64,000 nt of DNA from Amphiscolops sp. MND2022. Its lineage: Eukaryota. This document shows, piece after piece, positions 4,057 through 33,855 of this stretch. The stretch is from contig OZ076415.1 of NCBI GenBank assembly GCA_964187785.1, positions 22,692,001 through 22,756,000 on the forward strand, written 5' to 3'. The notes below the pieces were generated by a model. That model made no database searches. It saw only the letters and a program-made list of their open reading frames with translations, and was not told where the DNA came from. Both the position numbers and the translations under genes were made by a program. The stretch's first letter is position 1. Every line of letters starts with the position of its first letter.

Positions 4057-4595
4057 AACAAGCCGAGAACGGCCAAAGTCGGCGCCATATCTAAGGCTCA
4101 AAATTGAAAAGGGGGGACCCTTCGGGCTTTGTGAAACTCCAGCTGGTTGCAAAAAATTAAAAAAAATGAAGGGGGGGACCCTTTGGGGACATGAAAAAAT
4201 TTCCAAAAAAATTTTTAATGAGATTTTTGAACAGTGTCACAGTGCCGAAAAATGTAAAAGGGGGGACCCTTTGCGATTTTTTGACATCCATTGTGTTGCA
4301 AAATATCGAAACAAATGAAGGGGGGACCCTTTGGTGCAATCCAAAAAGTTTCAAAAAGTCTCATAGTGCCGAAAAAAAGTGGGGGTATGGGGGATCCTTA
4401 GTGTGTTTTCGAGGTTCTGGACGTCTGTTTTGTTTTCGTTTGGACGCGCTTCTGAGGTTTGAGTTGTTGAGGTTTGAAGTTGTTGAGGTTTGACGTTGTT
4501 GAACAAATGAACAAAAAAGTGGACCTTACGCGTCTAAAAAAACTACCCACTGTAATAGTCGGGCTCATTTTCTACTAAAATGCGCCGACTAAAAA
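4057..4595 (+). mobile_element. Helentron-associated (HINE/DINE-1-like) non-autonomous element
   Basis: Starts AACAAG. It has sub-terminal inverted GTCGGCGC/GCGCCGAC, a hairpin near the far end (gtcgggctcatttt..aaaatgcgccgac), internal ggggaccct and cacagtgccgaaaa repeats, A/T-run ends and no TSD. Confidence 0.65.
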
Positions 4596-7500
4596 TATTC
4601 TGTTTTTATGTTAAAACAAACTCAACAGAAGCATTCAGTGAAGAAAAAACTCAAATCTGGGGGTAATCAACACTGCTTAAGCACTGTAGTTAAAACCAAA
4701 GCGCAATCTAGTTTTTGGGTCAACCAACACCCTTTCTCTTCCATATTCAGGCGAATATGTTCTCAAAATTCCAACGCAATTTTACAAGCTACTCTCAACA
4801 CACTGCCGCTGGTGGTATATTAGCCAGTATATGCCTATAAATTCAATTATATTACCAAATGACTGTTCAAAAGGTTCCATTTGTTAAAACTAACGCCATA
4901 AGCCCGTGACAGAGTTCTGGTAAATAAAAATCAAACATAAATTACATGCTTCATTTGTTTTCATTGAAGTGTAGAGCATAAAAGAACGGAGAAAAACAAA
5001 AGCTTTGACAGAATAATAGCAGCCTTTGTCTCAAAACTCACTGTGAATCGAACCAATACTTAGTTCCTTATCTTAATTTCAACCGCATTACCCGTTAAAA
5101 GCCGTCAGCAGCCTTAAGCGGTGAAATTTGCTTCGTCCACAAATATACAAAAAACGGAACTGGGAAATGCACTTTGTAATCACTCTGTACAGTGATAGCT
5201 TGATTATAACAGTTCAGCATTTTATTTCAAGAAAAAAGCTTCAATCATATATTCTTGCTCTGAAGGTTTCCATAGATGAAAAACGACGTAATACTTTACG
5301 ACGGAGAACGTTTTTAGAGAACAAAACTAGCTATACAAAAGTACTCTGAAGTATTGGGGAATAGGAGAAACAGCGTTAGAATAAAAACAAAGAAACGCTC
5401 AGTTTCAAAATCTATCTTTCTGCCTATATTATTAAAAACTGTTAAAAATTCTTGATGTTTTTATGTCCAATATTATCATGTCAATTATTTCATATTTTTA
5501 TCAACCTACCAACAGAAAATTTACTACGTAGCTTCATTATGAATAACTTTTCTCAACTAGTCGCAAAACATAACATGGAGCTAGAACAGCACTTTTTAAA
5601 CCAAAAGCACTTATCATTTAGAACAAGCATATTGGCATTTCTCACGTTAAAAAAGACAAACTGTTGGAAAATGCCGCTGCATTTTTCATAGATACTGAAT
5701 GCGTAAGGAACCCTAATTCCACCACGTACCATTTTTGATTGATCGCTTCAAAGTGACGTTTCACTGATTGCTTTTGTGCCAACAAAATTAAGGCCGTCGA
5801 TATTGGTGCCAAATTACCCATTAATCACTTCCTTTTAGACCATGACAAAACAAACGAACTATTATTATCCATACAACACAGTACCAAAAATAGCCAAAAT
5901 GTTCTCGCCACTCAGAAATGGTCACAAAGAACAGAACAAGGTTGTATTTAAGCAGCTAAAAATGTTACCCACTTTCATGAGTAATAACCTGTCCATTCAT
6001 GTATGGTATACATAGTCATCAATTTGTTTTCAGATCTTACCAACAGTTTAACAAGCCAAAATTTGTCTCCGATATTAATCATTTCCGCGTCTAAATTAGA
6101 AAGCAGCATTCAAACCAATGGGGTAAGTTTCTATTTTTCCTAGATGTAATTACGGCCATAGCTTAGATGCCGTGCAATAGCGCTCGCTGTTGCGAAAGAA
6201 AGAACCCTAATACCCTGTGAACAGATTTAGTTTTCATGCCGCCAGCAAAAAACAGTCCATCAAAAGTAGAATATCTAGTCATGGAGTTCTTCAGCTGACA
6301 TTTCTTTTTATGAAGATAAGTAAAAATGGCGACATCTAACAATAAGTGCTGTGCTGTCAAGCGAAATTTATTTCAGTCTTTTGTTGCGAAATCCACAATA
6401 ATGTATTTTGTATTGTTACCACGTCGCATACTAGTAGCTCTCCTGTAGTTCTATTATTTTGCTCCTTTTATATTTTTCTTCACCGCTGCAGTGGGCAAAA
6501 AGGCTGGAAAAAACGAAACTGTGAGAGCGATCAATTAAAAATCTGAGGAAATGAAGAAAAGTACATGGAAATAGGCGCTGTCATGAATTGCGCAAGTTAT
6601 TTAACATAAAGTTGGATTGGTTCCGGTTTGAATGCATCTGATATCAACAACCAGCGAGAAGTTCAATTCATTTTATTATAACTAAGTCAGTTACCTCGAG
6701 TTTCTATTGCCGTTTTGACCTCCGGGCGGGATACATTCTACGCCAGCCGCTTATTTGTTGGATTAACTTGACCTTCTGAGCAGAAGTTGACGCCAAGTCC
6801 ATTTTCCGCTTTCAAAAGAGAACAAAAAACAGGAGTAAGTTAACTTCATAACGTTACAGCGAACTGTAAACCCGACAGCTTCCTTAGACTGGATTGCCGT
6901 TTGGCTTAATTACCAATTCGCGGTTTATCGCCAGTTATCAGCACTTACTTTTCAATAGCACGGCATATGGCCTCACTTCTACCTGTCATCACGATTACCA
7001 ACTTTGTCATCTCTTAAAGTACGTATTTATTTTTATATAGTTCAAGGGGCTGATCTTTTTACTGGGAGATGAAAACTTGACCTCTTTTTATGTCAGTTAT
7101 AATTCAGCTGAAATTATCAGTTTTTACAAATTTCATTTCCACATAAAGCCATAGTGACGTTAACACAGAAAACCACCAAAGTGGCATTTCCGAAAAACCA
7201 CTGTAGATTGCGGCTGTTACATCTATCGGCTGAGTTTGAATTCATATTATGGTTTAGAAAAGGTTCTCATTAGAGCCTTTTCAAAACCATAATGTGAAGT
7301 CAAAGTTGACAGAGGGATTTTAGAGGCCCAGGTTTGAAAAAGAACATGAACTAAACTAGTGGTATTCCAAAAATGCGATTTAACTGCATGAAATGGCAAT
7401 TTATATTGTCTAGTTTCTCAAAAAGTATTCAAAAACGAGGTTAGCTTCAAAAAATGAAAGTTTCTCAGAACTTCATTGTGATTACAAGGATTTTCATTTA

Positions 7501-9267
7501 AAGTTTCTGCAAGCAGTATTTCAAAAGATATAAAACCCTAACTTTGGCCTATTTAATTGAAACAGCAGTTATTCAATATTTTGAATGTTCCAATGAACAA
7601 TTTTGGTCAAATTTATTTTTGATCATTCAAAAGGAAAATCACTGTGGAGGCCTGTTCATGTGCTACATCTAGAAAACCATCAGAAGAAGTCTGTTAGAAA
7701 GTCTCAATAAGTCCAAGAAAAAAGCCTCAAAAACTACTTTTTTGACTAGTGTGCAACTTTCTTTTGCCCAAAAAATCTAAGCATAAATTTCATCGGAACC
7801 TATTTCGGTCAAAATAGAGCCCAAAGTCTTGCCGAAATTTATACGCAAAACCCAATCGCTACCTAAAATGGTTTACAAAAAAAGGCCTTTGAAAACTTGA
7901 CCGGAGGTCAAAAATGCCTCGAGTCGCAACTATTCATCGCGCTTTGCTCATTTTTAAAAAATGGAATTTCACCTTTGCAAAATCTGTTGGCCAATAAACA
8001 GACGTCGCTCGCCCAAAATATCTTACTTTATATGCTTCTGAAATCTTCGCTTCACTGGTTTCTTTTTCAACTTAGGTTGGTATTTTCTGTTCTTCTGGTA
8101 TTGCGTTGTTCATATTGGAAAAAGACCAGATTATTACAGTGACTAGTTTTCTTCTCCAGCCTCACACTGAAGTGTCCGCTTTTTGTTCAACTTCACATCT
8201 TGGATCATTTCTCAGAATTCACAGCTGGACCAAGCTGAAGTGTATCTAAGTGCATTCACGACATTTACAAGGCTAGACGACACCAAAGGACAACGAAAAA
8301 CGAGCCCAACAATATTTTTTCACCAGTCAGCGAAATTCAATTTATTTCAGCCTCTCCGGAGAGATTAGTTCACATCTTTGAACAGATTTGTAGCTGACAA
8401 CTCAAGGTCAAGATTGCTTGTGACGGCAGCACGACCTTTGACTTTTAGTCTCTTACCCAATTAGCTGCAGAATATTTGACGACTCCGACTATTTTCATGA
8501 GCATCAGTTGTTACAAAAAGCTGTCTACTTAATCCAACTACACAACAATCAGTCAACTGATCAATCAAATCAGTCAACACTTCGTCAGACACAAAACAAT
8601 TTTTCACTTCGAATCTCCACAGACGCAAAAATTAGTTTACATCTTATGAACAAGCGAGTCGGAAGAATAACAACGAAGCAAAATTTATTTATTGATATTC
8701 AGCGCCGAAAAAAACTAAGCACTGGGTAAGCATCGGTGTTATTTTAAACGACCAAATTGATTAAAAACGCGGTTACAGTCAACTTCGGTTACAACAAACT
8801 CGGTAGTAATGAACATTTTAAACGAAAAAAACCGATGTAACGAAATTCGATTATACATTTTTAGGTCTCAAGACTTTTAGATGCATGCGTCAATTCGTTA
8901 GAAACGGAATTGGCTTTTATGTTCGCCTTTGTTTCATGTTCTAATGTTACATGCTTGGAAATCGGAAATAAAAAAACGACTTTAGTTGGAATCCAGCGAG
9001 GTACCTATGCCTTCAGATTCATGAATTCAGGCACACAGACGAAGTTTGTCGAAATTGGATTTGGAAATTTAAAACATGTGAAAGTTGCAGAAAATGAGTT
9101 TTGAGTCGACAATCGAAAGTTTTGCTTGATATGACTTCTGTTGGCCCAGAAACTTTGATTCTGATCAGATATTATGACCCAAAACTTTGATCAAATATTC
9201 AGAAAATGACTTTCAAATTACTGAAAATAATTGAAAATTTTTTGACTAACTTGTTCATATCGCAATA

Positions 9268-9440
9268 CAGTGAACTCCGGTTAATTCGTACCCGGATTTA
9301 TAGGATCTTCGTTTATTTTGCATGTATCTGAAGCCCCAATTCTCGACGACCAAAGTAATATTTTCCGGTTAATTCGTATTTCTAATTACTCGTACTATTT
9401 TATTCGGTCCCTAGCGATCCGAATTAGGCTGATTTAACTG
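9268..9440. mobile_element. Tc1/mariner (pogo-like) MITE
   Basis: Left end TA|CAGTGAACTCCGGTTAATTCG and degenerate right end cgaattaggctgatttaactg. A more decayed relative lies at about 8775-8855. Confidence 0.55.
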
Positions 9441-9554
9441 CAAAAGGCATTCATTTCGTAAACCTCAATAGTGGATGACTACTTTAATGAAAATCCAATG
9501 TACCGCAAAGGAGCTGTTACACTATTTATTTTGAATGATATATATGTCTGTCAG

Positions 9555-11252
9555 ACTGTAGCAAGCAACACGATTGCGCCCGGAACAATGCCAAATTATA
9601 GGACCTCCATCTTACAATACCTATTCATGGCTGTTTCGGGTTGGTGAAGTCTATCTAGGTCAACAGCCTTTGGAACAAATAACGGAATTTGTCAGGAGCG
9701 AAGCAGTCTCTCTCAAACCTAGCGTATTGCATTTAAACACGCCTGTGTGCTTCTGCGCCAGGGCAGATCCGAGTCTTCGACTGTCAAGGAACTTTTTCGA
9801 CAATAGAAAATAAGCAAGGCATCTGAGAACATTCGATACTTTACCTCTAGTGAATTGAAAATCCAAGTCTTTGAAGATGTTTTTATCTTGTTTGCGTCCC
9901 TTTTTTTCGTCAGGGCAATCTTTAAATTCTGAATACTCCAACGGTAAAATCTGCGTCACTGAAACTTTTCGCTTTTTAAACTAGCTCAAGTTCATTTAGA
10001 CCTTTTGATTCCAAAACCCCATTGATTGTTTCAGAATACCACAATGAATAACATTGAACATCGGCAGCCAATGAGGTTAGAATACCTGAGATGACGTCAT
10101 TGCGTGATCTAATTCCCCCTGAACACGTGATCGAGGCGTTCTACGGAACGATGACAGGTAGACATCGCAGAGCCAACTTTCATGATACATTATTGAAGAC
10201 AGGGTTTTTGGAACTCATCTATAACCGCCCGTTTTAGAAACTGCTTTTTCTAATGAAATTACGAAAAAAACTGAAAATTTGAGAAAAAATTCTACTAGAA
10301 ATTTAATCTACGCTAAAATACCTTACATGGGAAATAGTTGAAGGTTTAAAGACCAAAGTTTTAAATGTTTCTCAATCAAGAAGCAGCATTACAGAGCTTA
10401 TGAAACAGCTTTGCTTCGTAGTATTTTGACTAGGAACATTCGATTGGGGAAACGTTTGGGTCCCAATAGGTCGATTAAAGAATGACTTTCTACCTGCGAT
10501 TACCTTAACTTCAGAAAAAATATTCCAGAACACAGAAACTCGTGTTCGAATTTATACCGAAGTTATACAGTTAGCAGTTACATTTGAAGAAGCTTTAGGC
10601 GGTTAGTTGGCGTTGACAAATGCATATCTGCGGTGTCTTATGACAGGGGTGTTTTTCTTCTACTTCGGACTCTTCTGTTCCTTTCTGCTGATAGCAGCCT
10701 GCAATATCATAGGCAAGAAGATGAACGACTTTTTGAAGGACAAAGACTCGGATAATGTTCCTTTCATACTCAATACCTCGCATGGTAAGAAACCAATTCA
10801 TGTTATTTCAAGTCGCCATGAAAGCAGATGTTGTTTAATACATAAAAACATCGTTTCTCAACTGAAAACCCCGTAAAATGTACGTAGGAAATCACTAGTA
10901 TTCCATATTCGGTGCTTGGAATTGACACTTTCAAAAACTTGTAACTGGTTTTTGGAGTCTTAAAACCTCTCGAATCACCCAAACGTCCATCTCTTCTGAA
11001 AAATAATGGTTGATATTCTTAGATCCTCTTTCTTTCACAGATTATTCCAAAGACGACACGGTAGCACGGAAGATTCGGACTCGAAACAACCGATCTCTCA
11101 GTGTGGTCACAGCCACCATGCTCAACACCAACGGCACCACTCGCACGTGCAAGATATCATCCGTGAAGCAGCCGCCCAAAATACAGATAGGGGTCATGAA
11201 GATGAAGAGGAGGGGCGAGGGCGGGGGATCGACACATGGGCATGTCACGTGA
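9555..11252 (+). CDS. 3' exons of an unidentified membrane protein (exons 9555-9639, 10647-10784, 11041-11252)
   Basis: GT-AG joins are phase-compatible (gtcag|act..tcgg|gttggt; gacag|gg..catg|gtaaga; tttcacag|at..tga). They give TVASNTIAPGTMPNYRTSILQYLFMAVSGVFFFYFGLFCSFLLIAACNIIGKKMNDFLKDKDSD...HVT*, a hydrophobic segment followed by KK, with GC3-rich codons. Upstream exons were not resolved. Confidence 0.55.
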
Positions 11253-12190
11253 CCAATGGGTGGGGTGCTTCAATTAATGTCACCAACTTCACCAGTCAAC
11301 TACTTTGAAATGGGAAGATAACTCAGTTTTTGGCTCAACTTGAATTCTTTCGAATTCCAAAGGGACAACTTGAAGCATTTGCGGAAAAAAATACCAACAA
11401 AATGTATATATCTCCTTTATTTTTGGTTTTAAGAGATTGTGCTCCTGTTTCCGTGATGGGGCTTTAATTTCAGCTGTATCACCTTTTCCAAATGAGATGA
11501 TTGATTCAAGAACACCGCTGGTTAACTCAGTCGAAATGACAAACAAATTGATCATTTAAAAAAACGTAGAAAATTAGTCCTAAAGATGAAACTCAGGAGT
11601 TGGTGCATATTCAATTGACAGCCTTTCAAGCAGGCCACTCAAGAGAATAATCCGTTAGTATCACCCAACCCATTAATTGTTCAAAGGATCATCTAGCAAG
11701 TTATGTTACCCGATCCCAATCAATGACGTTCCGACCTTAGCTGGATCAAGAACCTGTTGAATGCTCATGGCAATTGGATACACGGCAATTGGATGTGCAA
11801 TGTTTAACACGGCATTGGATATTTGATGTATATAAGTACCTTTACCATTTACATTTCTAGAATACTTCTGTCAGAAATACAGTCTTTCGTTTCTAAACTG
11901 TTCATTGCTGCAAAGATTGTCGAGAGCGATGGGAATTTCTCAGAGGCAACTAGTTTAAAAGGTTTTTTGTTTCCAACAAAAAAAAGACGAAAGCTACGAA
12001 GACCGATTCTCCTCCCACAAAGACCAAAATCCAACTTTCATTTATCATACAAATCAGCACTTTAACTCAAGGTTTTGAATGAAAAAAATGACTAACTCCT
12101 AGACCACACAAAGGAGTGAAATAAGTAAATCGATTATTGCAGACTCATTACAGACGATGATGATGCAGGACTTTCAGAAGGAAAATTTGA

Positions 12191-19655: not shown

Positions 19656-20060
19656 ACACCCGTGGTCTGCAACGAAAGGAAGAAACCCCATACCAGACAC
19701 TATCCCAGTCGACCGGTAGAATTAGGTTTCAAGGAAAAAAGCTGCAAAGAAACACATGTTTAAAAACTAAATATGTGATAAATTTCATCAAACGCATCCC
19801 TTTCGCTCACAGTTTCTGGGAAACATGCCGCATTGCCAATCTGAAGAGCCATCGAGATCCGTTGCTTCAAAAAGCTGCCAAAGCGTGGAACAACAGTGCA
19901 ATTTACAGAGACACGTAATTGAATGGAAATTTCAATGCTTTCGCCTAAAAACCGTGTACTACGGCCACCGGTTGAAAAATGTATCCATTGTGTATCGATT
20001 GAATGCTACAAATCGATTGAAAGCTAGCCTAATTGTTGTGATAAACTTATTAAATAGAGA
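19656..20060 (+). mobile_element. Decayed copy of the 'acacccgtggtctgcaa' head plus ORF-X repeat
   Basis: Alignable to 30774-31180 (+) and 33855-33360 (-); shared strings include catgccgcattgccaat and gagatccgttgcttcaaaaagctgccaaa. Confidence 0.7.
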
Positions 20061-20225
20061 CTTTTGATTGAATTGATTGATCTTCATCACATCACTGGAA
20101 GCGTTGTGCAGGACCGATCAAGGCTTTCGGGGGATCTGTGGCTCTTCTGTTGGCTTTTCTCACCAATTGGGTGGACCTATCTAGACAATTCTGTTAGTTT
20201 GTTCCAATTTCCTTATGTGATTCCT

Positions 20226-20831
20226 ATGGTTTATATAGTTGGAGCTAGCTCATTACACGTAACAGTAGAATCAACTACTTACAAATTCAGAAAAACTATT
20301 CGGAACTTCATTACCGCAATACCAGGTCTCAGTTTCTGTCACAACTCGAGACTGAAAAATTTGCAGCATCTTCTATCTCAAGGAAAACTGAAATATCAAC
20401 ATAACCTGCTCCTCTGGCACGACCTGATAAATAATACTTTATCCCCACATTCAAGCAACAATCATAAACCCTGGACCCCTCAGCAACTAGTTACGGCATT
20501 AAAACAGCAAAGTCATCGAATAACTGCAGTCATTTACTGCAGAAGATTTGGGACTGCAGATATCTTTAACCAATTACTGGCTACTGATATCCTTATAATC
20601 CGGGCTGATAAACACCTTCTATCTCACAGAAAGAGGAACAATCATTGGATTAAAACGCAACTCGCAGAAGTGCATCCCTGCGTCCGCATTGAACTGAACT
20701 TGCTACACACGGTTTTACAGCGGAGCAAAAAGCTGCAGTCAATAGTTATTCAAAACCGCTCCAGAACCAGAAAACGTAAATCCAAGAAAAGATCCACTTC
20801 CGCGAGAAGGAGGAACAAAAAAGCGAATTAG
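20226..20831 (+). CDS. Intact 201-aa SGNH/GDSL esterase-like ORF (ORF0) upstream of LINE ORF1
   Basis: ATG at 20226. Motifs IVGASSL (block I Ser), PGLS, WHDLINN and EVHP resemble SGNH blocks I/II/III/V. The C-terminal tail is very basic and there are no stops. Confidence 0.6.
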   Translation: MVYIVGASSLHVTVESTTYKFRKTIRNFITAIPGLSFCHNSRLKNLQHLLSQGKLKYQHNLLLWHDLINNTLSPHSSNNHKPWTPQQLVTALKQQSHRITAVIYCRRFGTADIFNQLLATDILIIRADKHLLSHRKRNNHWIKTQLAEVHPCVRIELNLLHTVLQRSKKLQSIVIQNRSRTRKRKSKKRSTSARRRNKKAN

Positions 20832-20913
20832 GAATCTCTAACTGGGTAGCTATTTGAGCCTTTGTTGGTTTGGAGCGGCCCGGGGCGAGTAACCTGCTTG
20901 CTTTGAATCAAAA

Positions 20914-22104
20914 ATGACTGGCACACGCAGTAGAAATCAATCCACCTCGGACGAAAAATGTCCGCAGTGCAAAAGTAAGGTAGCTGAAAAATAAAAGAAA
21001 TCAATTCTTTGCAACGGTTGTTTGAATGGTGGCACGGGACATGTGGAGGAATAGAAGTGAAAGATTTGGCAATATTGGCGAAGTACTCGGCTGTGCACTG
21101 GTACTGTCCCAAATGTGAAAACGACACTTTGCAAAAACAAGGTATGACCATCATGAAGTCCTTAAAAACGTTAAATCAATGGTATAATAATGAAAGTGAA
21201 ATTCGCAAACAGGAAACTGATCTATTGATGTCAATTAAAACTGATATCGAAATCATCAAGGAAAAAAACCCCCTCAGGAAACACCTATGCAGAGAAGGCT
21301 AAAATCGCCCGAAAACCTTCGCCCTCTACGAGACAACAAATACGTCGAAACAAAGAGAAAGACTTGAGTACCATATTGATTGTCAGTGGCAATCAAAAGT
21401 ATCGAGATAGCATTGAAATTAAAAGGGCATTTTCAAAAATTTTTCCTATGAAAAAATTGATTGTAGCATTCAATACTGCTCGGGGAAACATTCACTTAGA
21501 ATTCTTGAACTCTCAAGAGGCTGACGAGGTGTTCTCCAACTGGAAAGCTGATTATCTTGGAACGAAAACCAGTATACGAAAAGCTAGCGCTAGAGGTGAG
21601 CAGAGAAACGCTGTCATTAAAGGTGTTCCGAAAGAGATAGAAAAGGTTCATATTACTGAAATTCTCCAGAAGAAGTATCCTGGGATCTATGTGAAAAGAT
21701 TCGTAAAAGCGAATGGAACAATTCTGCAGACAGTGAAACTGACCTTCCAGTCAGAGCTTCAATACAACAATGCACTATCTGAGGGACTCTTTTTGGATTC
21801 CATTTACTACCAGCCATATGCATTTGTTCAGAGAGGCATAAGAATCATTCGATATTACAACTGCCAAAAATTCGGTCACCTTAGCGGAAACTGCCACTCC
21901 AAAACAGCCTGTAAACATTGCAGTGAAGATCACAAAATTGAAGACTGTCCGAATAAAGAATTAGAATGCAAATGTATGAATTGCAAAGGGACTCACGATG
22001 CGGATTCACTTGTGTGCCCAACTTACATTAAACAAAAACAAGTGGTTTATGACGCTCGAGGGCTAACTGATGAAAATCATGCTGGATGGCATGATGGCTC
22101 CTGA
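20914..22104 (+). mobile_element. LINE ORF1: PHD finger, probable RRM region and three zinc knuckles (1 stop, 2 frameshifts)
   Basis: Reconstructed CPQC..CNGC..WWHGTC..WYCPKC; TYAEKAK; YNCQKFGHLSGNC, CKHCSEDHKIEDC, CMNCKGTHDADSLVC. Lesions are TAA at 20992, a -1 frameshift near 21015 and a +1 frameshift in the A-run near 21265. Confidence 0.85.
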
Positions 22105-25100
22105 AAGGAGAATATCATTCTTACAGATCAACATTTGCGGCTTGAGTAATCACAGTAAAATTGCAATTGATGCATATCTTGAAAAACATAAACCAGATGT
22201 GGTTTTCTTGAATGAAACCAAACAACAAATTGCTGATAATGCCTTTACCAATTATACAACTCTCAGTAGTACTCCAAAGAAATCGACAGGCGGTGTTGCG
22301 TTGCTGTTTCGTAACGATGTGGCGTATGCTCAAATAGAGGAATTAGAGACCAAAAACAATGACTATATTGTGGCTGCAGCTAATGTCCGCGGCCTAAAAT
22401 TACTAACTACGACTGCTTATGTAAAACCCGATGACAAAGGTGAACTACTAGAACTCATTTAAAAGACTTGAAGCCTGTAAAGTCTACGCAGATACAAATC
22501 ACATGGAAGGTGTCCTTTTCTTTGGCGACTGCAACGCCAGACACTTATACTGGGGTGATCAGAAGTGCAATGCACTTGGAAATGAGTTAATCAGCCTCGT
22601 ACCAACTTATACTATTTTGAACGATGGCCAACCTACTTTCCTCTCAATCAACGGTCAAAGTGTAATAGATCTTTGCATTTGCTATGGAAACTTCATTAAC
22701 CAATACAAATGCTCGCTTACAACTGATGAAGATACGGAACTATTCACTGGAGCACCCTCCAGGGACCACCTGCCTGTGCTAGTTTCTCTTGTCGAGTCGA
22801 AAAGTGGTTATTTCAAGGAGAAGCCGTGGATTGAGAAAGCAATGTGGGATGACTGGAGCGCACATCTAGAAACTGAAATGCTCGACTGGACAACTTCAGA
22901 TAATGCTCTGGAAATGTGGGAGTTTTTCAAGAACTCCTTAAGAGAGGTCACACTACTTTTCATTCCTTTCAAAAAAGGTACGCAACATAGTAAACCATTT
23001 TGGTGCACCAAGTTAACTATAGCCAGTAAAGAGCTCAGGCAGCTGCGTCGGAACTTCCGATACAAGTCCAATTATGCAAATTTAGAAAAACTAGCAGAAG
23101 CGAAAGAATTATTCAAACGACTACTCAGTGAAAAGGCGTCTGCCTGGATGAAAGACTACTTGAAGACACTGGGACACAAACGAGGCAAAGAATTTTGGGT
23201 ATCGTACGAGAAACTGTTCGCTGGAAGCAGTTCCCAAGTGGATCTCATCAAGAATAAACACGGGAAACTGCTGCTCTCAAAAAAAGATATCGCTCAAGAA
23301 TTCCAAGAGACCTTCTTCGAAGGAAAACATCTGGAAACTCTCAACTTCGACGAGTCAATGTCAAGGACAGTCTCAGGTTATCTGGACTCGTTTGATGATG
23401 CTTCCGAGCATGTTTCGGAAGTTTTTCATGAACCTTTCACAATGGAAGAACTAAACGAAGCAATGAAACAATCTTCTGATACAAACTCCTTCGACCCTGA
23501 CGGGTTCCACGTCAAAATGATCAAAAACTTGGGAGTCAATGCGAAAACTCTTCTGTTGGAGATTTTTAATACATGTTGGGAACATGCTGTATGGCCCTGG
23601 TCTTTATCACGAATTGTGTTTATCAGGAAGCCTAACAAAGACAGATATGACGACTGTTCCAGCTATCGACCGCTATCAATCTCTAGTCATTTTGGAAAGC
23701 TCTTTGAGCGTATGCTGTGCAATAGATTAAATTATTTCACGGGAACCGAGAACATTCTGGCGGACAAACAAGAAGGTTTCAGAAGTAAAAGAAACACAGT
23801 CAGATCTCTGTACAGGCTACATCTTAATCTGGAAAATTCTAAATTAATGAAAACACCGACCGCTCTACTCAACATTGACCTCGAAAAGGCCTTTGACGGC
23901 GTGTGGATAGATGGCCTACTTTACAAACTCAAACATTACAAAATGAACGGTAAAATGTTCTGCATTTTACGAACCTTTTTGAAGAACCGAGAAGCATTCA
24001 TTGAGTTATCTGACTTCCGTTCATCTATGTTCAAAATAGACATTGGTGTCCCTCAGGGCAGTGTCTTGTCACCACTTTTGTTTGTAATTTTCTTGAACGA
24101 TTTTCGGAGTGAGGAACCGTGTCACTACAAGTTCGCTGACGACAGTGCAAGTGCTATTTTAATTCAAGGCTGCAATGAAAATGATATCTCCCAAAAACTC
24201 GAACACTCTTGCAGGGGGATCGAACAGTGGTGCCGCAAATGGAGAATGGGAGTGAATGGCTCCAAGACAGAATTGATTGTTTTCAATGTGGAAAGAAACA
24301 ACATAACTGCGCCGAGCCTGAACAATGAAGCGTGCACTATCACAAAAGCTACAAAATCTCTCGGTCTCCTGATTGATGATAACCTGTGTTACAAAGACCA
24401 CGCCGAAAAATTCTGTAACAAAGCTAAACGCAGCTGGGATAACGCTTCTAGAATTTTGAGATGCAAATGGAGCTTGTCAATTCCAACGTTAATTTTCCTC
24501 TACACTACTATCATTGTACCGCAGCTCTTATATGCATCAGTAATATGGTTTGAAAGAAATAGAAGCTCAGTCATGAGAGTCCAGAATCATATCATCAAAT
24601 CAATCTTTCGACATAGTTTTACTCCTACTATTAGCATCTGCGAAACGCGGCTAGGACTACCCCCTCTGGACATTTACAATGATGCCATAGAAATCAAGTT
24701 TGTCATCAAAGCCAAAAGAGCCAATGACTTGGTGAGTAATACCCACTCTCTTTACATCTCCAACCGAAGTAAAGCTGCAGCATTAGAAAGTAAGTTAAGT
24801 AAATTCAAAAAGTTCCTTGATGACGATACTCGGACAGAATACAACAAGCACGAAATAGATGAATTCATAGAACAAAGTTGGATAAAGAGATGGAAGAACA
24901 CCCAAAACAAAGGCCTCTTGCAATATCTCCCTAACACGCAACCACAATTAAACACCTGTTGTCCTTTAACTATTGGAGATCCTTATGTTGTCAATAAAAA
25001 TTGCGAATTAGTAATTGGGAATTCCTTTGCTCTTGCCGAATATGCCTGGAACATGTGGAAGTGTGAATCGCCAATGTGCATATGTGGAAAGTCAGAAGAC

Positions 25101-25238
25101 AATCTCTATCACTATTTCTTCTCCTGTCCGCACTAGAACGAGATACGCCCAGACATACAGAGCCTAAATTTAATGGAAGCGACTGGTTGTCAAAAACTCC
25201 GAGATTTCATAATGAATACAAATAAACTGAACTTATAG
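22070..25238 (+). mobile_element. LINE ORF2: AP endonuclease, reverse transcriptase and C-terminal CCHC, no RNase H (I-group-like)
   Basis: APE motifs LQINICG, LNETK, GDCNARH, SVIDL; RT motifs YRPLS, DLEKAFD, GVPQGSVLSP, FADD; C-terminal CICG..H..C. There is a +1 frameshift near 22458 and a premature TAG at 25134; the reading continues to TAG at 25236-25238. The 3' end runs into the N gap. Confidence 0.95.
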
Positions 25239-25267
25239 ACTATTGACCTATCATTAACATCCTCCCG

Positions 25268-25467
25268 NNNNNNNNNNNNNNNNNNNNNNNNNNNNNNNNN
25301 NNNNNNNNNNNNNNNNNNNNNNNNNNNNNNNNNNNNNNNNNNNNNNNNNNNNNNNNNNNNNNNNNNNNNNNNNNNNNNNNNNNNNNNNNNNNNNNNNNNN
25401 NNNNNNNNNNNNNNNNNNNNNNNNNNNNNNNNNNNNNNNNNNNNNNNNNNNNNNNNNNNNNNNNNNN
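25268..25467. other. Assembly gap (200 N)
   Basis: Run of N. Confidence 1.
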
Positions 25468-25713
25468 ATGTATCGATTTGCAATACTTCTCAACTTTATT
25501 TTCTTCAGCCTCAGTGGTTCCTAGGTTGCATAAGGTGACTTGTTTCAGGAGGCTACGTGGCATCAGGTCAAATGAAATAGATCGAAGAGAGGGGGCAAAA
25601 TGAGATCTAAATAAATTGATCTGAATAATCAGGTCTAAAAATCTCTTCTAATTTGATCTAATTTGAGAAAAAAAATAAGTCAATTAGGATCTAAAACTAA
25701 AAAGTGATATAAA

Positions 25714-27868
25714 GTATAAAACGTGCCTCGGATATGTTATGTCCCCATTTCCTCTAGTGCCCCGCGGCCCCTTGAGGCCGCTTATATTCCCATCTTGCTA
25801 AGCGAGGTCGAACAGGAGCAAAGACCTAGCGAGAACGGAGATCGCGAAGCGATCGTAGTGGGAGGAATTCCGGACGTTTCGGCAAAAGACGTTTCGGCAA
25901 AAACATGGCGGCGGACGTTTCGGCAAAAAAATATGCCGAAACGTCTCAGGCTAAAAAATTTGCCGAAACGTCTCGCATGATATATGCGATGTATGCACGC
26001 TCGCCCTCACCGTCGCAAAGACCAGCTCCCACTACGATCGCTTCGCGATCTCCGTTCCCGCTAGGTCTTTGCTCCTGTTCGACCTCGCTTAGCAAGATGG
26101 GCATATAAGCGGCCCCAAGGGGCCGCGGGGCACTAGAGGAAATGGGGACATATCCGAGAGGGGAACAGGACGTTTCGGCAAAAGACGTTTCGGCAAAAAC
26201 ATGGCGGCGGACGTTTCGGCAAAAAAAATTTGCCGAAACGTCTCGAATTTTTTTTTGCCGAAACGTCTTTGCCGAAACGTCCTTTTCCCAGTGGGAGCTG
26301 GTGTTTGCGACGGCTTCGGGCAAAAAGTTCGATTTACTAAGTTCGAATTTGAAGTAGTGCAACAAGTTCGAATGGAATAGTTTCGAAACACCAAGTTCGA
26401 ATTTTCATATCGGGCATATCCGGTGTAAACTGGACATCCTTCACACAAGATCCTGAGAGCTCCACCGCCTAGGATCTAAAGGAATCTAAAAACTGAAATG
26501 TGGGGCATATCCGGTGTATGCACGCTCGCCCTCACCGTCGCAAAGACCAGCTCCCACTACGATCGCTTCGCGATCTCAGTTCCCGCTAGGTCTTTGCTCC
26601 TGTTCAACCTCGCTTACCAAGATGGGAACATAAGCGGCCTCAAGGGGCCGCGGGCACGAGAGGAAATGGGGACATATCCGAGAGGGGAACAGGACGTTTC
26701 GGCAAAAGACGTTTCGGCAAAAACATGGCGGCGGACGTTTCGGCAAAAAAAATTTGCCGAAACGTCTCGAATTTTTTTTTGCCGAAACGTCTTTGCCGAA
26801 ACGTCGTTTTCCCAGTGGGAGCTGGTGTTTGCGACGGCTTCGGGCAAAAAGTTCGATTTACTAAGTTCGAATTTGAAGTAGTGCAACAAGTTCGAATGGA
26901 ATAGTTTCGAAACACCAAGTTCGAATTTTCATATCGGGCATATCCGGTGTAAACTGGACATCCTTCACACAAGATCCTGAGAGCTCCACCGCCTAGGATC
27001 TAAAGGAATCTAAAAACTGAAATGTGGGGCATATCCGGTGTATGCACGCTCGCCCTCACCGTCGCAAAGACCAGCTCCCACTACGATCGCTTCGCGATCT
27101 CAGTTCCCGCTAGGTCTTTGCTCCTGTTCAACCTCGCTTACCAAGATGGGAACATAAGCGGCCTCAAGGGGCCGCGGGCACGAGAGGAAATGGGGACATA
27201 TCCGAGGCACATTTTATGCTTTGCATCATTCCTACATTAATGTTCTTATCGTTTTCCTTCTATTCCAGAATTCTACAAACTGGTATTCTACAAACTGGAC
27301 CTTTACCAGTTTGTAGAAAACCAAAAACAATACCAAGGTAATACGGGACGTTTCGGCATGAAAAATTTGCCGAAACGTCTCGAGATTTTTTTGCCGAAAC
27401 GTCTTCGCCGAAACGTCTTTGCCGAAACGTCCTGTTCCCACACGGATGCAGGTAATTTCGCCTTATGCCATTTCGCCTAAAAATTTAGTTGAGTCATTTC
27501 GCCTAAAAAATGGCGAAATGACCAAAGTCAATGACTCCTAAATTAGGCGAACTAAAAACAAAACTATATTTATATACTTGGTTAAATTACATACTTGGTT
27601 TCTTAACACAGAAAATCATTGAAACTGAAATTAAACATGGAAAAAATTTTCAATACGTTCCCTTTCTAATGTAAGGCAAATCCGGTGTATGCACGCTCGC
27701 CCTCACCGTCACAAAGACCAGCTCCCACTACGATCGCTTCGCGATCTCCGTTCCCGCTAGGTCTTTGCTCCTGTTCGACCTCGCTTAGCAAGATGGGAAC
27801 AAAAGCGGCCCCAAGGGGCCGCAGGGCACTAGATGAATTGGGGAAATATCAGAGGCACGTTTTATACT
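25714..27868. mobile_element. Composite foldback element with long TIRs and nested gccgaaacgt-repeat MITEs
   Basis: Left arm gtataaaacgtgcctcggatat...cgatcgtagtggga is the reverse complement of arms at ~26015-26160, 26540-26685, 27065-27210 and 27710-27868 (the last ends gaggcacgtttatac). Internal palindromic arrays of gacgtttcggc/gccgaaacgtc. Confidence 0.7.
26140..27205. repeat. Near-perfect 524-bp tandem duplication
   Basis: Identical ORF starts at 26498/27022; aatggggacatatccgag at 26140, 26664 and 27188; one visible substitution. Confidence 0.9.
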
Positions 27869-28120
27869 TACGGCGGTTTATTCAACACGTGAAACAGAAA
27901 AAGACGTTTCGCCTAAAAAAATTAGGCGAAGTGACCAAACACGTTAGGCGAAATGACTTTAGGCGAAATGGCATTAGGCGAAATGACCATTTTTCTCCCA
28001 CACAGGTGGGCGGAAATAGGTCGAAGGAACGGGATCGAAAATCAGAGTTAGTCCTCAAATCGGCATACCAAATTTTTGAATGGGATCGAAACAACTCGGA
28101 TCGAAAGTTTTATAAGGTAG

Positions 28121-28243
28121 TCAGATATGTTCACATACCCCTAGTGCCCTGAATGCAGGAGCGAAGCGAAGCGGAGCGACGTGTCATATGGCCATGCCTT
28201 AATGTTGCTACTTGGCGAAGGGAGCGAAGCGACCGAGCCATTC
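28121..28243 (+). mobile_element. Short interspersed 'gcgaagcg' element
   Basis: Closely similar reverse copy at 62886-63005; partial copies at ~13051-13130 and ~44065-44110. Confidence 0.75.
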
Positions 28244-28442
28244 AAGAAATACGAGAAAAGTCGACCGCATTCCATTCGATCCCTGCAATTCGATCAAAAG
28301 GTTCGACCTCTGTCCTTTCGACTAGAAAACTTCGACCCATTTACAGCCACCCTTCCCACACATATTAGATCATAAAAGTGTTAGACCTAAATATTTTAGA
28401 TAAAAATAGATCTGAATGTTAGACCTAACAGGTAGATCTAAT

Positions 28443-30710
28443 TCCATTAGACCCAAGCAATTAGATCAAAGGCGTACACTCAATTCAGGAGACGCGATGC
28501 AAGGGCATTCACAACCATGACATCTCCTCACCAGCTGTTTACTCAATTCCCAGTTTATCAATTCAACAACGTCTGGGCGTTTATCAGCTCGATACAGTCC
28601 ACGCGGTTCCAGCCTTAAAGGCAAATCGATTTTCAGCGACTGCTTTTCGAGAGAATTGAGATTATAATGACGTGAGAAGTTGATCATCATCAAGTTTCAG
28701 GACCAGGTTTTTGCAAGGAACAACGTTCAGACACTGAAATCCCAATTTGTTATGATTGGCGTTGTAGACTTTCGAACGTTTTTCATCCACTCTTAAGACT
28801 GAATCTTCGGCGGTTTGGACGTAAACAGGTTTCGTCCACCACAGGTTCCATCGAAAGGACTTTCCTCTTCACTCAGCCATTTCTCAAGCGTTTTTGTGAA
28901 GGAAAAATCTTGGGATGTTTCGGAAAAAATCGCTGTGAGAAAGTCACTCGCGCCAAAAGCTGAGGCCAAAACTGAGGGAAGTGCAAGTATTGATGCGAAT
29001 GAAACCCCAAGACCATCCAATTCACCTGGCAGAGCCAGCTGAGACCCGAAGTTTAGTCAAAATTCACGTTTACACACTTTAGGAAACCAGTCGCGTACAT
29101 TTTGTGAATTTCATTTTCCCCTGTGTTTTTTCTACATTAACAAACTTTTTGAGATCTTCCAAAACAGTTCTGTAATCATCACTCGAAGTTGCATAACTGA
29201 GGAACCATACGTACATCTCGACTCCAAACACTGTAAAAAACAAACTTCGATGTATATAAGTTGAGGTCGGACATCCAGGTGTATTTCAAAAATTTTAGAT
29301 AGCAGATATTGTTGGTTTATCAAATTCAAAACGTTTACGTCAATATTCAAGAACATGTTTTCTTTGAGTTGATGGACTTCTATCGAACAACGGACAAGAT
29401 GTGATGCCAATTCATCAACCAATTTGGTACCCACGCCTACTTGTAGACTTCCTCACTTGCTCGACGTGATTCAAAGACATGGTATCCAACGCAATTTGCT
29501 GATAACCGGCGGAAAAAGTTGCCTACAACGATCGGACATTCCCATCGGGCAATTCTTTCATCAGGAAGTCCTTCATCGGGCATTTTTAACCCAATTAACA
29601 TCATACCAAAGAACTACCGTCGAATTTCTTAAGGTAATGTTGCCTCTAGAATCGCATTCACAAGATTTGTTAGGGCTCTGTAAAAGGTCAGTCCGTTTTA
29701 CCCGTTTAATTTGGCAGTCAAATTGTTCAAAATTTGATGCGAAATCCTATCCAAACCTTCACTAGAGCTGTTGAGGAAGGACATGAGAGCCGTTTGGACG
29801 ACGAACTTTGAGATTGAAAAACAATCGATATCTGTGGAATTCGGAGCCGAGTAAACTTCCCTCTGCGGTTCTTTCTGCTTGACGGTCGCGTTTTTGTCAA
29901 CCGTGAAATCTGCAATTGTATCGCGGTCTAGTGCCATTCTGAATGAGGCCATAACTTTGCCTTCGTCTAAACTAGTGCGAATCGAACGCATTCGTAGATC
30001 TAACTTGCTCTTCTGTTGAGAATTCCTGTCGCGTTTCGGTTTTCTCTCAATGGCACCAGCCCAAATACGCTTGTTGATTGTTGCACTGAGTGATGACCTC
30101 TGACGTTTAACTCTTCTAGGTGGTGTTTCCAAAAAAGCTTGTTATGGAGACCAAATTGAGCCACAAGGTAATCTTTGACGAGGTGTCGCAATTATCAGCG
30201 TTTTTGGGTGTCAAGGTTTCAGCTGAGGGAACCGTGAATTGTTCAGAACTCTTTCCGAACGAACATCGCCTGAAGTGGAAAAAATGGTTTCGGGTCCTAA
30301 TTTGACATCATGACACTGAGGGATAGTGTTTATTCAAGTGCACCTACAACATTGTTATGCTCCGGCCTCCATTCTTGATAAATTGGCGCATTTCATATAA
30401 ACCCATCCGTTGCAAATCTTACATTTTACACAGTCAATTCGCTCTGAGGGCTTCATACTCTTGAGCGCGTTGCAGGTATCAATGTTGTTATCAAAACTCA
30501 ACAACAAAACCTAACCACTTGCAGTATTACCTCATTTATGTGTGTGCCAATCTCGCTGAAACTTACCACCACAGTGATACAATCAGTATACGAAACAAAA
30601 CATTGACTTCTTAAAATGGAATATATAAGGCATCATCTCCCGAGTTGCTATTGTTCTTTCAGCTCGAATGCAGCGAGAAACAAACAAAAAAGCGTCAGAG
30701 ATGCCTTCCA
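28443..30710 (-). mobile_element. Decayed PHD-finger-containing repeat unit A
   Basis: Alignable along its length to 31200-33355; minus-strand CVKCKICNGWVYMKCANLSRMEA (PHD-like); many stops and frameshifts. Confidence 0.55.
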
Positions 30711-31199
30711 GTTTTGTCAAATTCAAATCGTTGCCATCTCTCAAGCCGTTCATGTATCACTGGTGTCATCATGACACCCGTGGTCTGCAACCAAAGAAGT
30801 AAACTCCATACCAGCCACTACCTCAGTATACCAGTAGGAAGGAGAAGCAACATACAGACTTCTAACACCAGCCACTATCCGAGTCGACCGGTTGAAAGAA
30901 GTTCTAAAAACCTACAATGAAGATTTATTTGTTAAAATTAAACAATTTGTGAAAAACTTCATCGAACGCATGTCTCTTGCTCAGGTTCAAGAAAACCGGT
31001 CGCATTTCCAATTCGAAGAACCATTGAGATCCGTTGCTTCAAAAAGCTGCCAAATCGTGGATTGTCAAGCGAACAACAGTGCATTTCACAGAGACTCGTA
31101 ATGGAAACTTCAATGCTCGCGCCTAAAAAAGCTTGTTTTTCTATGGCCATCGAAAGAAAAATGTATCCATTTTGTATCAATTTGTAAAAAGTCTCAAGT

Positions 31200-33855
31200 T
31201 CAGTTGCTTCAGCCTCGGTCGTTCCTATGTTGCATGAGGAGCCTTAATTCAGGAGACTTGGAGCAAGAGCATCCACAACCATGACATCTCCTCACCAGCT
31301 GTTTACTCAATTCCAAGGAATCAATTCAACAACGTCTGGGCGTTTATCAGCTCGATACAGTCCACGCGGTTCGAGCATTAAACGGAAGTCGATTGTCAGC
31401 GTATGCTTTTCGAGAGAATTGACATTAGCATGACGTGTGAAGTTCATCGTCATCAAGTTTCAGGACTATGTTTTTGCAAAGAACAACGTTCATCCACTGA
31501 GACCCGAAATTGTCCTGATGAGCGTTGTAGACTTTCGAGCGTTATTCACCCATTCTAAACACTGACACTTCGGCTGTTTTGGACGTGAACAGGTTTCGTC
31601 CGATTTTTCTGGGTTCCATCGAGAGCACTTTCCTGTTCATTCTCCAAACTCAGTCATTTCTCAAGCACTTTTTTGAACGAAACATCTCCAAATGTTTCCG
31701 AGAAAACTGTTGTGAGAAAAGTTGAAGCGAAAACTCGGGATTCGCTGTTATAGATGCGGATGAGCCCCAAGACCACCCATTCCAACAAGCCGAGGCAGGG
31801 TTACACACTTTGGAAAGCCCGTCGAGTACGATTTTGTCAAACCTTTCCAAGAGAACTGGATGGTTGAAACAAGTTCTCAAGAAGTACAACAATTTTGCAG
31901 ACTGAAGCAACTTTACAATATGAAAAATACAAAATCCGCATCCAATTTTCAACAGTTTTTTTTTACCTTTTTTCCAATTCAAAAGATTTCTTTCCCAAAA
32001 CGACTGCCTGTGATTTCTGGCTCAGCGGTGAACCAAAAAATTTTGATCCGTCTTTCGCTGGTGTTTTGATGCCGGGCAGGTTTTTTGAAAGATGCTAAAA
32101 TGTCGATTGTCGTTTTTCTGTGATGTCACCAAGGCAACAAATTTCATGTTTTGTGACTTCAATTCGATTCCTAGCTTTTATTCTGCTGCAGCATTTTTTT
32201 GAGATCTTTCATAACGGTTTTTTAATCATCCCCTAAGTTCACATATCGAGGTACACATATCGAGGTACACAAACATAAGTTCACATATCGATTTCTCATA
32301 AGTATATTTTTGAATCCAAACCCTCATTCAGATCTTGAAAAGAATCCGAATATGAAGCTGGAGACTGAAAATCTTCTTGCTGGGTCCCTTCACAAAATTT
32401 GACTATTGAATCACTGTACAAGAGGAAAGTTGGCTGACCGTACGCTGAGTGTGAGTACTTATTAACTTCAGGGTGCATTTCAAAAGTTTTCTGAAGCATG
32501 AATTGTCGGTTAATCGAATTGAAAGAGTTTACAAAGTTAATTTCCAGGGTTTCGTTTCCTTTGGGTTTGGTGGCTTTCTATCAGACAACGGAAATCATCT
32601 GATTCCCATTCAGCGCCTTTTTCGTACCTGCATCTAATTGTGCAATACCATATCTTGCTTGACAGGATTCGAAAACAGGGTTTTCGGCATACGTTGCTGA
32701 CAATTGGCCAAAAAGTATTGCCTAGCGCGATCGGACGAGGTACTTCATTGGGCTTTTTTAACAGAATTAATTTGACAAAAAATATGTACGGTCGATGTTT
32801 GAATGGTACGTTTCCTTCGACAATCACAAATACAAGGTGTGCTAAGACTTTGAAAAAAATCAAGCCAGTTTGCCCGTTCGACTTGGCAGTCAAATTGTTC
32901 TACAATTGATGACAATTGCCGTTCAAACCTGCACTAGAGCCGTTGGGGAAGTGCACGAGTGTCCACTGAAGAGCACCTATAAAATATTAATTCGACAAGG
33001 CTTCGGCCTCCATTCTTGTTAAAATGGCTACTTCATAGGGACCCATCCGCTGCAACGCCTTCAATACACCCTGTCAAGTAGCTCGGTGGGCTTCACACAC
33101 TTGAGAGCATTGCCGGTTTCGTTGTTTTTCATCGAAACTGAACCACGAAACTTAACCAAATGCAAGAGAATACCACGTGTGTGTGAGCCAGTCTCCTCAA
33201 AAACCTCCACCACAGTGAAACAATCATAATGTGAATCAAAACATTGATTTCATAGATTGAAATATAAGTGGAAATATCTCTTCGGGTTGCGATTGTTCTT
33301 TCAGCCCAAGTGTAGCGAAAAACTAGCAAAACAGCGGAAGAGACTTTCTCAAGAACTTTTTTCAGTTAGCATTTGTTCAAAATCAAATCATTGTCATATC
33401 CGAAGCTATTCCACAAGTTTATCACAACAATTAGATTCAAAAGTTTTGAACTAAACCTCCCATTTCCCACAGAATTCTCGCAAACATTCCTAATCTTTGT
33501 ATTTCGTTCTTGCAATAGTCCTTGGAACAGCTGTTGCGGCGAAATATTGCCTTGCTGTTTCTCGGTTTCCGGAATGTATATGGCAAATGCAACGTATTTC
33601 AAAAGTTCTACAAATTGGCAATGCGGCATGTGTTTCAGAAACAAAGATGAGCAAGAAAGATGCTTTTTTTGAATACATTTATGATATAATTTTGTTTGTT
33701 GGTTTAAACTTTCTTCTTTGAAACTCGATGATCAGCGTTGATTGTGACATTGTTCTTGTTGTTTTGGTTCTGTCGGGCTACTGGAATAAATGTTGTCTTG
33801 AGTAGTAGTGTTTTATCGTTTGCTTAGTTCCCATTTGTTTGCAGACCACGGGTGT
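31200..33855 (-). mobile_element. Decayed PHD-finger-containing repeat unit B with 5' head and ORF-X
   Basis: Homologous to unit A; begins with the acacccgtggtctgcaa head at 33855-33839. Confidence 0.55.

Follow-up and report, generated by a model that had tools for sequence, protein, structure and literature searches.

A three-cistron LINE in Amphiscolops sp. with a predicted SGNH-like first gene and an AUG-free interval upstream of ORF1

The stretch of Amphiscolops sp. MND2022 DNA analyzed here (contig OZ076415.1, positions 22,692,001 to 22,756,000 of the forward strand; 64,000 nucleotides [nt] in full, hereafter the window) contains one dead copy of a long interspersed nuclear element (LINE) with three cistrons, which occupies the plus strand from 20027 to at least 25267. 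The textbook LINE has two genes; in this one, an additional open reading frame (ORF), termed ORF0, stands in front of ORF1 and ORF2. We consider it probable, by a comfortable distance, that the element is a three-cistron LINE in which ORF0 encodes a diverged SGNH domain followed by a basic helix, ORF1 is of type I, ORF2 encodes an apurinic/apyrimidinic endonuclease (APE) and a reverse transcriptase (RT), ORF1 is reached by leaky scanning, and the ORF0 protein (ORF0p) plays an accessory role. The LINE family is young; the window copy itself is decayed.

The first-pass annotation of this DNA described a LINE with three ORFs, an ORF0 of 201 amino acids (aa), a spacer of 82 nt and an overlap between ORF1 and ORF2. 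The ORF listing and Pfam place all of these where it had put them: the ORF1 ATG at 20914 lies 82 nt 3' of the ORF0 stop, and the ORF2 ATG at 22070 overlaps the end of ORF1 at 22104. Related sequences are referred to below by L numbers, of which L006 is a sister copy from a public assembly. The features of the window copy are listed by position.

20027 to 25267, plus strand: LINE copy (non-long-terminal-repeat retrotransposon); the 5' end is defined by L006, and the 3' end enters an N gap (25268-25467).
20027 to 20225, plus strand: 5' untranslated region (UTR) of 199 nt; the boundary of homology with L006 is at 20027.
20215 to 20220, plus strand: ATG-TGA start-stop mini upstream ORF (mini-uORF) within the 5' UTR, 11 nt 5' of the ORF0 ATG.
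20226 to 20831, plus strand: ORF0, a predicted SGNH-like protein of 201 aa, from the ORF listing (ATG at 20226, TAG at 20829-20831).
20229 to 20913, plus strand: ATG-free interval of 685 nt in all three frames, the largest of the element (0 ATGs observed, 10.3 expected).
20846 to 20879, plus strand: conserved block and tentative candidate stem-loop in the ORF0-ORF1 spacer, GTAGCTAYYTGAG...TTGGAGCGGCCC, from comparison of copies.
20914 to 22104, plus strand: ORF1 (type I/IC), with a PHD finger (20959-21116), a presumed RRM middle region and three CCHC knuckles (21853-22017).
22070 to 25238, plus strand: ORF2, with APE (about 22124-22721), RT (23625-24281) and a C-terminal CCHC motif (25077-25127).
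25239 to 25267, plus strand: start of the 3' UTR, cut by the N gap.

L006 and L001 have the start-stop mini-uORF in the corresponding position. The name ORF0 is also in use for primate L1, where it denotes a primate-specific antisense ORF of the 5' UTR that lacks an enzymatic fold; the ORF0 described here is likewise an extra small LINE ORF, but it is unrelated.

Several observations tie ORF0 to the element. ORF0 lies inside the stretch shared by independent insertions: positions 9916-15155 of L006 match window positions 20027-25267 at 97.6% over 5.2 kb, and the flanks of L006 are unrelated to those of the window, so that L006 is an independent insertion. The 5' end common to the two lies 199 nt before the ORF0 ATG. 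The order ORF0-ORF1-ORF2, with all three ORFs open, recurs in L003, L004, L011, L016 and L029 (L011 and L016 are metagenome contigs), and decayed copies in L001, L002, L026 and L028 keep the same order. Counted across several assemblies and metagenomes, at least nine LINE lineages have it. The consistent 5' linkage of ORF0 that the first-pass annotation had set as a check is borne out by the shared 5' end of L006 and by these open arrangements. A word search returned 12 relatives of ORF0, mostly stand-alone and about 200 aa long.

The selection check proposed in that annotation also came out in favor of a functional gene. Between the window copy and L001, a subfamily copy that is 77% identical, the ratio of nonsynonymous to synonymous substitution (Ka/Ks) is 0.17 for ORF0 and 0.14-0.24 for segments of ORF1 and ORF2. 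ORF0 is under purifying selection, comparable to that on ORF1 and ORF2. That ORF0 is instead a chance or host-derived ORF, either a juxtaposition or a transduced 5' flank of a two-ORF LINE, is scarcely credible. The window does hold a single copy, and ORF0 has no database annotation; such an origin is at odds, however, with a 5' boundary common to the window and an independent insertion, with the same order in at least nine lineages, with the low Ka/Ks of ORF0, and with an ATG desert (described below) that stops exactly at the ORF1 ATG. Chance juxtaposition was rejected on these grounds.

Two further observations concern ORF0 among the copies. Its sequence (20226-20828) differs by about 0.7% between the window copy and L006, which are both dead, compared with 2.4% for the whole element, possibly by chance, gene conversion or source-lineage structure. 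In L026, the 5' part of a LINE (ORF0, the PHD-bearing ORF1 and an APE fragment) is tandemly duplicated at 3136-6008 and 7458-10327, with the units 4.3 kb apart.

The interval between the first two start codons, those of ORF0 and ORF1, lacks ATGs in every frame in the window and L006 (688 nt), L003 (645 nt) and L004 (594 nt), and in each of these elements the interval is the longest ATG-free stretch, the next being at most 256 nt. It is also ATG-free in L011, L016, L017, L015 and L020 (666-783 nt), and L029 has one ATG in 941 nt. Pooled over nine LINE lineages and compared with the rest of the same elements, the interval has 1 ATG in 6.4 kb (0.2 per kb) versus 19.4 per kb elsewhere, a ratio of 0.01; the lowest ratio of any other trinucleotide is 0.65. 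Among 107 representatives of the ORF0 protein family, 68 have no internal Met. The contexts of the two start codons also differ: a pyrimidine occupies position -3 at eight of nine ORF0 ATGs, the exception being L004, which has lost its original start, and a purine occupies it at all nine ORF1 ATGs. ORF0 homologues that precede the gag gene of BEL/Pao elements (L005, L027) show no ATG depletion.

A weak first AUG, an AUG-free interval and a stronger second AUG match the signature of leaky scanning. We propose that the LINE RNA carries three cistrons and that the weak ORF0 AUG, with its pyrimidine at -3, would engage only part of the 40S subunits. The stretch devoid of AUGs in every frame would let the remaining subunits slide to the ORF1 AUG with its purine at -3, and access to ORF2 would be through its short overlap with ORF1, as other LINEs do it. 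The arrangement resembles the leaky-scanning polycistronic mRNAs of viruses, such as sobemovirus ORF1/2a and avian reovirus S1 (PMC3791421, PMC2978376), in which one capped RNA yields two proteins because its first AUG is weak, a later one is stronger and none lies between them. A review of LINE protein biogenesis treats leaky scanning only as a viral strategy (PMC3894237), and we found no report of it in LINEs in the literature.

Other routes to ORF1 are conceivable, namely termination-reinitiation, an internal ribosome entry site (IRES) in the spacer, or readthrough of the stop codon between ORF0 and ORF1. A 34-nt block across the family's ORF0 stop and the spacer is kept in the window, L006, L001, L002, L003 and L004. 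It includes a tentative 12-bp hairpin that would pair in each of the five sequences examined and has 2 compensatory pairs (an equally good result came from 30 of 500 shuffles; z -2.5). This conserved block and candidate hairpin of the window/L003/L004 group could serve such a route, and ORF1 is in the frame of ORF0 in five of the nine lineages, with no further stop between them in L004. L011, L016 and L029 lack the block, however, and reinitiation is generally inefficient after an ORF of 200 codons (discussed in PMC3894237). Readthrough that joins ORF0 to ORF1 was rejected, as most spacers hold further in-frame stops. None of these routes predicts either the loss of AUGs in three frames over 590-940 nt or a weak-then-strong order of Kozak contexts. 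We regard them together as a distant alternative, and leaky scanning is preferred because reinitiation, an IRES or readthrough would not predict the AUG desert.

At the protein level, ORF0 belongs to a large family. When 1.84 billion cluster representatives (clusters at 50% identity) were searched exhaustively with HMMER, 896 clusters were recovered at E<=1e-3, of which 601 pass E<=1e-10 and 142 pass E<=1e-30. Nearly all members stand alone, are 185-235 aa long and have a match that begins at residue 1; ORF0 thus belongs to a large stand-alone family for which Pfam has no model. Because no Pfam model detects ORF0, annotation pipelines miss the family. Of the nuclear localization signal or RNA-binding tail claimed in the first-pass annotation, the basic tail is real and family-wide, with a median Lys plus Arg content of 34% in the last 35 residues and a median net charge of +24.

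The SGNH fold suggested for ORF0 in the first pass is upheld by structure prediction. The AlphaFold model has a predicted local distance difference test (pLDDT) score of 81 with 13 sequences, and a pLDDT of 95 and a predicted TM-score (pTM) of 0.86 with 77 sequences. Predicted strands lie at residues 3-6, 29-31, 61-63, 99-104 and 123-126. The best Foldseek matches are PAF-acetylhydrolase Ib and GDSL lipases (probability up to 1.00, E 7.6e-4), and alignments by VIA-align, which span about 150 residues, reach Z 10.8. In an unbiased structural search of 48,161 chains, the top 42 rows are SGNH/GDSL hydrolases (Z 10.8-7.5); the OSK domain of Oskar is also among the structural matches (Z 7.9). The model places ORF0p in a three-layer alpha/beta/alpha, flavodoxin-like fold with five parallel strands, of the SGNH/GDSL type.

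The conserved residues of ORF0 fall where this fold would have its active site. The motifs, in order, are GASS (S8), PG (G34), WHDxxNN (N70) and xHP (H150), followed by the basic C-terminal helix or tail. Counted over the 107 family representatives, S8 is conserved in 86%, A7 in 83%, G34 in 86%, N70 in 92% and H150 in 94%. Block I corresponds to G6-A7-S8-S9-L10 after the strand at 3-6, with the Asp of GDS replaced by Ala; for Blocks II and III, G34 follows strand 2, and N70 follows strand 3 within W64-H65-D66-x-x-N-N. The positions of the putative catalytic Ser, oxyanion Gly and Asn, and catalytic His are therefore kept in ORF0p. In Block V there is no conserved acid three residues before H150, that is, the Asp of DxxH is not kept; E156 (85%) or D66 (90%) might be a substitute acid. 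Further conserved residues are W64, H65 and D66 (about 90%), H75, Y104, R107 and E156. In L004, the N-terminal GASSL block of ORF0 (400-618) is lost from an otherwise intact element, with stops 5' of the present ATG at 619, and its ORF0 consequently lacks the nucleophile Ser.

A number of points weigh against the proposed three-cistron element with an SGNH-type accessory protein. What supports the SGNH assignment is a predicted structure and the placement of motifs: the TM-scores of the model are only about 0.48, a Pfam scan of the window ORF0 and 77 members taken singly gave no GDSL/SGNH hit at E<=1 (scattered noise only), and profile searches of PDB sequences with the 13- and 77-sequence ORF0 alignments gave nothing at E<=10. 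Without a conserved DxxH Asp, activity may be low, altered or lost. ATGs occur inside ORF0 in some decayed LINE copies (L026, L028, L001). When RNA evidence was sought, the sequencing runs found to hold the element were four DNA runs from one sample, with no RNA run, so that the transcript start, the single tricistronic mRNA and the translation of ORF0 are inferred from DNA. Finally, the window copy is dead, and a gap of 200 Ns that begins at 25268, 29 nt past the ORF2 stop, conceals its 3' tail and target-site duplication.

The missing acid also bears on a second interpretation of the protein, in which ORF0p has an SGNH fold but is non-catalytic and, like OSK, acts as a basic RNA- or lipid-binding scaffold that assembles or localizes the LINE particle. 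The GAS rather than GDS of Block I, the structural match to OSK and the extreme positive charge all suit a scaffold, and the esterase of the zebrafish LINE ZfL2-1 still binds liposomes when its catalytic residues are mutated (PMC3905857). Yet OSK has lost the Ser, Gly, Asn and His residues (PMC3905857), whereas in ORF0 each of them is conserved at 86-94% across 107 clusters that are otherwise about 27-40% identical, which is hard to explain without an active site. We therefore hold a purely non-catalytic ORF0p to be unlikely, although it deserves more weight than the alternative routes to ORF1. Most likely, ORF0p would be an accessory esterase or a membrane- or RNA-associating factor of the LINE particle.

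Within ORF1, esterase domains have been described from CR1, L2, RTEX and Penelope elements, and the esterase and arginine-rich motif of ZfL2-1 bind acidic lipids (PMC3905857). ORF0p may do the job of such an esterase domain and arginine-rich motif as a separate protein beside a classical ORF1p. Like the type IV esterase ORF1p of ZfL2-1 (Schneider et al. 2013, PMC3905857), ORF0 encodes a predicted SGNH-fold domain 5' of the RT gene, is very basic, goes together with an arginine-rich peptide, and retains Ser and His at the catalytic positions. In the ZfL2-1 type, the esterase is ORF1 itself, has a coiled coil in front (in type IV ORF1p generally, a coiled coil or a zinc finger-leucine zipper) and replaces the RRM/CCHC type. 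ORF0, in contrast, is a separate cistron without a coiled coil, its domain starts from residue 1 (strand 1 at residue 3), it coexists with a full type I ORF1, it has no sequence similarity to GDSL profiles, and the triad Asp is not conserved. H65 (90%), five residues before the Block III Asn, is a plausible counterpart of ZfL2-1 H191, and the position where ZfL2-1 S228 would be expected holds Y104/C105 in ORF0. The earlier proposal that the element holds both ORF1 types as separate cistrons survives in part: the separate esterase-like cistron is there, but with no GDSL match in Pfam or the PDB and no coiled coil, its relation to esterase ORF1 is one of functional analogy rather than demonstrated homology.

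Stand-alone GDSL proteins have been described in other retroelements, as ORF3 of the Vesta long terminal repeat (LTR) retrotransposons and Athena Penelope-like elements of bdelloid rotifers (Rodriguez et al. 2017, PMC5408684). Both cases involve a stand-alone SGNH/GDSL accessory ORF common to different retroelement classes, which here are LINEs and the BEL/Pao elements L005 and L027. The Vesta and Athena ORF3 lies 3' of pol and is recognizable as GDSL, whereas ORF0 is the first cistron, is beyond sequence detection and, in LINEs, comes with an AUG-free leader. Our literature search, which did not cover Repbase, found no LINE with an esterase-like first cistron plus a type I ORF1.

The ORF1 PHD finger and three knuckles, and the APE, RT and CCHC of an ORF2 without RNase H, were all listed in the first-pass annotation and are confirmed by Pfam and direct reading. 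The PHD finger is weak in the broken window copy and reaches E 8.5e-6 in L006, where 10809-11999 encodes an intact 396-aa ORF1 with the PHD finger and three knuckles. The knuckles of the window copy, at 21853-22017, are of CCHC type by direct reading, and the first has lost its first Cys. An RRM was sought by Pfam scan, with no other RRM test made, and none was found; the middle region is presumed to be RRM. With an N-terminal PHD finger and three CCHC knuckles, ORF1 is of type IC, its RRM part being presumed. Type IC ORF1 consists of a PHD, two RRMs and three CCHC knuckles and is published from the mosquito "CR1 subgroup 3 / L2 subgroup 2" (Metcalfe and Casane 2014, PMC4120745), with which the window ORF1 shares its domain order, N-terminal PHD finger and three C-terminal knuckles; the combination of PHD and three knuckles is thus not the oddity it had been taken for. 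An upstream esterase cistron is not reported for the mosquito elements (PMC4120745), and the window ORF2, unlike theirs, groups with RNase H-bearing lineages and not with the CR1 anchor.

ORF2 matches PF03372 (6e-8) and PF14529 (7e-8) in its APE domain and RVT_1 (PF00078, 1e-29) in its RT, and the Pfam scan found no RNase H in it. An N-terminal APE together with an RT makes it an APE-type LINE. Along its entire length, the window ORF2 shares 33% identity with the intact ORF2 of L004; the ORF2s of the window family and of L003, L011 and L016 are only 23-26% identical, in the RT core. A word search for named ORF2 relatives that would allow clade assignment gave almost no names. In a quick maximum-likelihood tree, with a bird CR1 anchor as reference and without the curated Repbase/RTclass1 set, the window/L004 lineage is sister (support 98) to RNase H-bearing ORF2s, and branches with support of 99 part it from the bird CR1 anchor group, across the deepest split. 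L011, L016 and L029 are sister to the anchor, and L003 is a third lineage. Judged by its ORF2, the window element does not appear CR1/L2-like, and the CR1/L2 framing of the first pass gives way to this placement.

ORF0 is a large module family that is also present in other LINE lineages and in BEL/Pao elements and is not particular to the window LINE. In two BEL/Pao elements (L005, 1016-5255; L027, 7001-14615), an ORF0 homologue is the first gene, 5' of gag, and L027 is intact, with a DUF1759 gag, a Pao RT and an integrase. ORF0 and ORF2 distances run in opposite directions: the window and L003 are 48% identical in ORF0 versus 26% in ORF2, and L011 and L016 are 28% identical in ORF0 versus 50% in ORF2. 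The ORF0 tree nests L003 with the window group (98/95). A conflict between the ORF0 and ORF2 trees was considered as proof of module exchange and set aside, as the two trees, unrooted, do not conflict over the five taxa they have in common; exchange of ORF0 among elements is suggested by two things only, the reversed distance pattern and the BEL/Pao contexts. A broader and more tentative proposal, which we rate a little short of an even chance, is that the family, which neither Pfam nor the literature searched contains, comprises catalytically competent SGNH esterases that form a portable first-gene module of animal retrotransposons, swapped between deep LINE lineages and BEL/Pao. In LINEs this module would be expressed from a tricistronic mRNA by leaky scanning, the first such strategy and the first stand-alone enzymatic accessory protein for these elements.

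Kapitonov and Jurka reportedly described the esterase-type ORF1p of CR1/L2/RTEX LINEs in 2003, and the role of the esterase in some ORF1 proteins has been a question since that year. As ORF0 is separate from a normal RNA-binding ORF1, its contribution can be tested by deletion of one cistron without destroying particle formation. Likewise, the AUG-free leader makes a clear and cheaply testable prediction, three proteins from one LINE RNA. About 900 clusters, several LINE lineages and BEL/Pao elements suggest a widespread retroelement accessory function.

The five ORF1 and ORF2 lesions noted in the first pass are all located by comparison with the sister copy and direct reading. The three in ORF1 are a stop (20992-20994) and two frameshifts, one near 21021 and one near 21262; the two in ORF2 are a frameshift (near 22458) and a premature stop (25134-25136). 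ORF0 had been called lesion-free; its frame is indeed open, yet its stop comes 7 codons before that of L006, so the label does not strictly hold. A second copy of the element was sought inside the window and none was found.

Other repeats surround the LINE. A dispersed repeat (74-83% identity; 19656-20000 and 30774-31182) is found immediately on the 5' side of the insertion, which places the LINE within or beside another repeat. A short, high-copy repeat of about 130-200 nt forms a cluster at 25705-27900, with copies in direct and inverted orientation that are 90-98% identical; many copies are also present in L001 and L002. Finally, a region of the minus strand at about 28100-33500 is 67-75% homologous to RVT-bearing stretches of L001 and L002, which points to a second, unrelated retroelement there.

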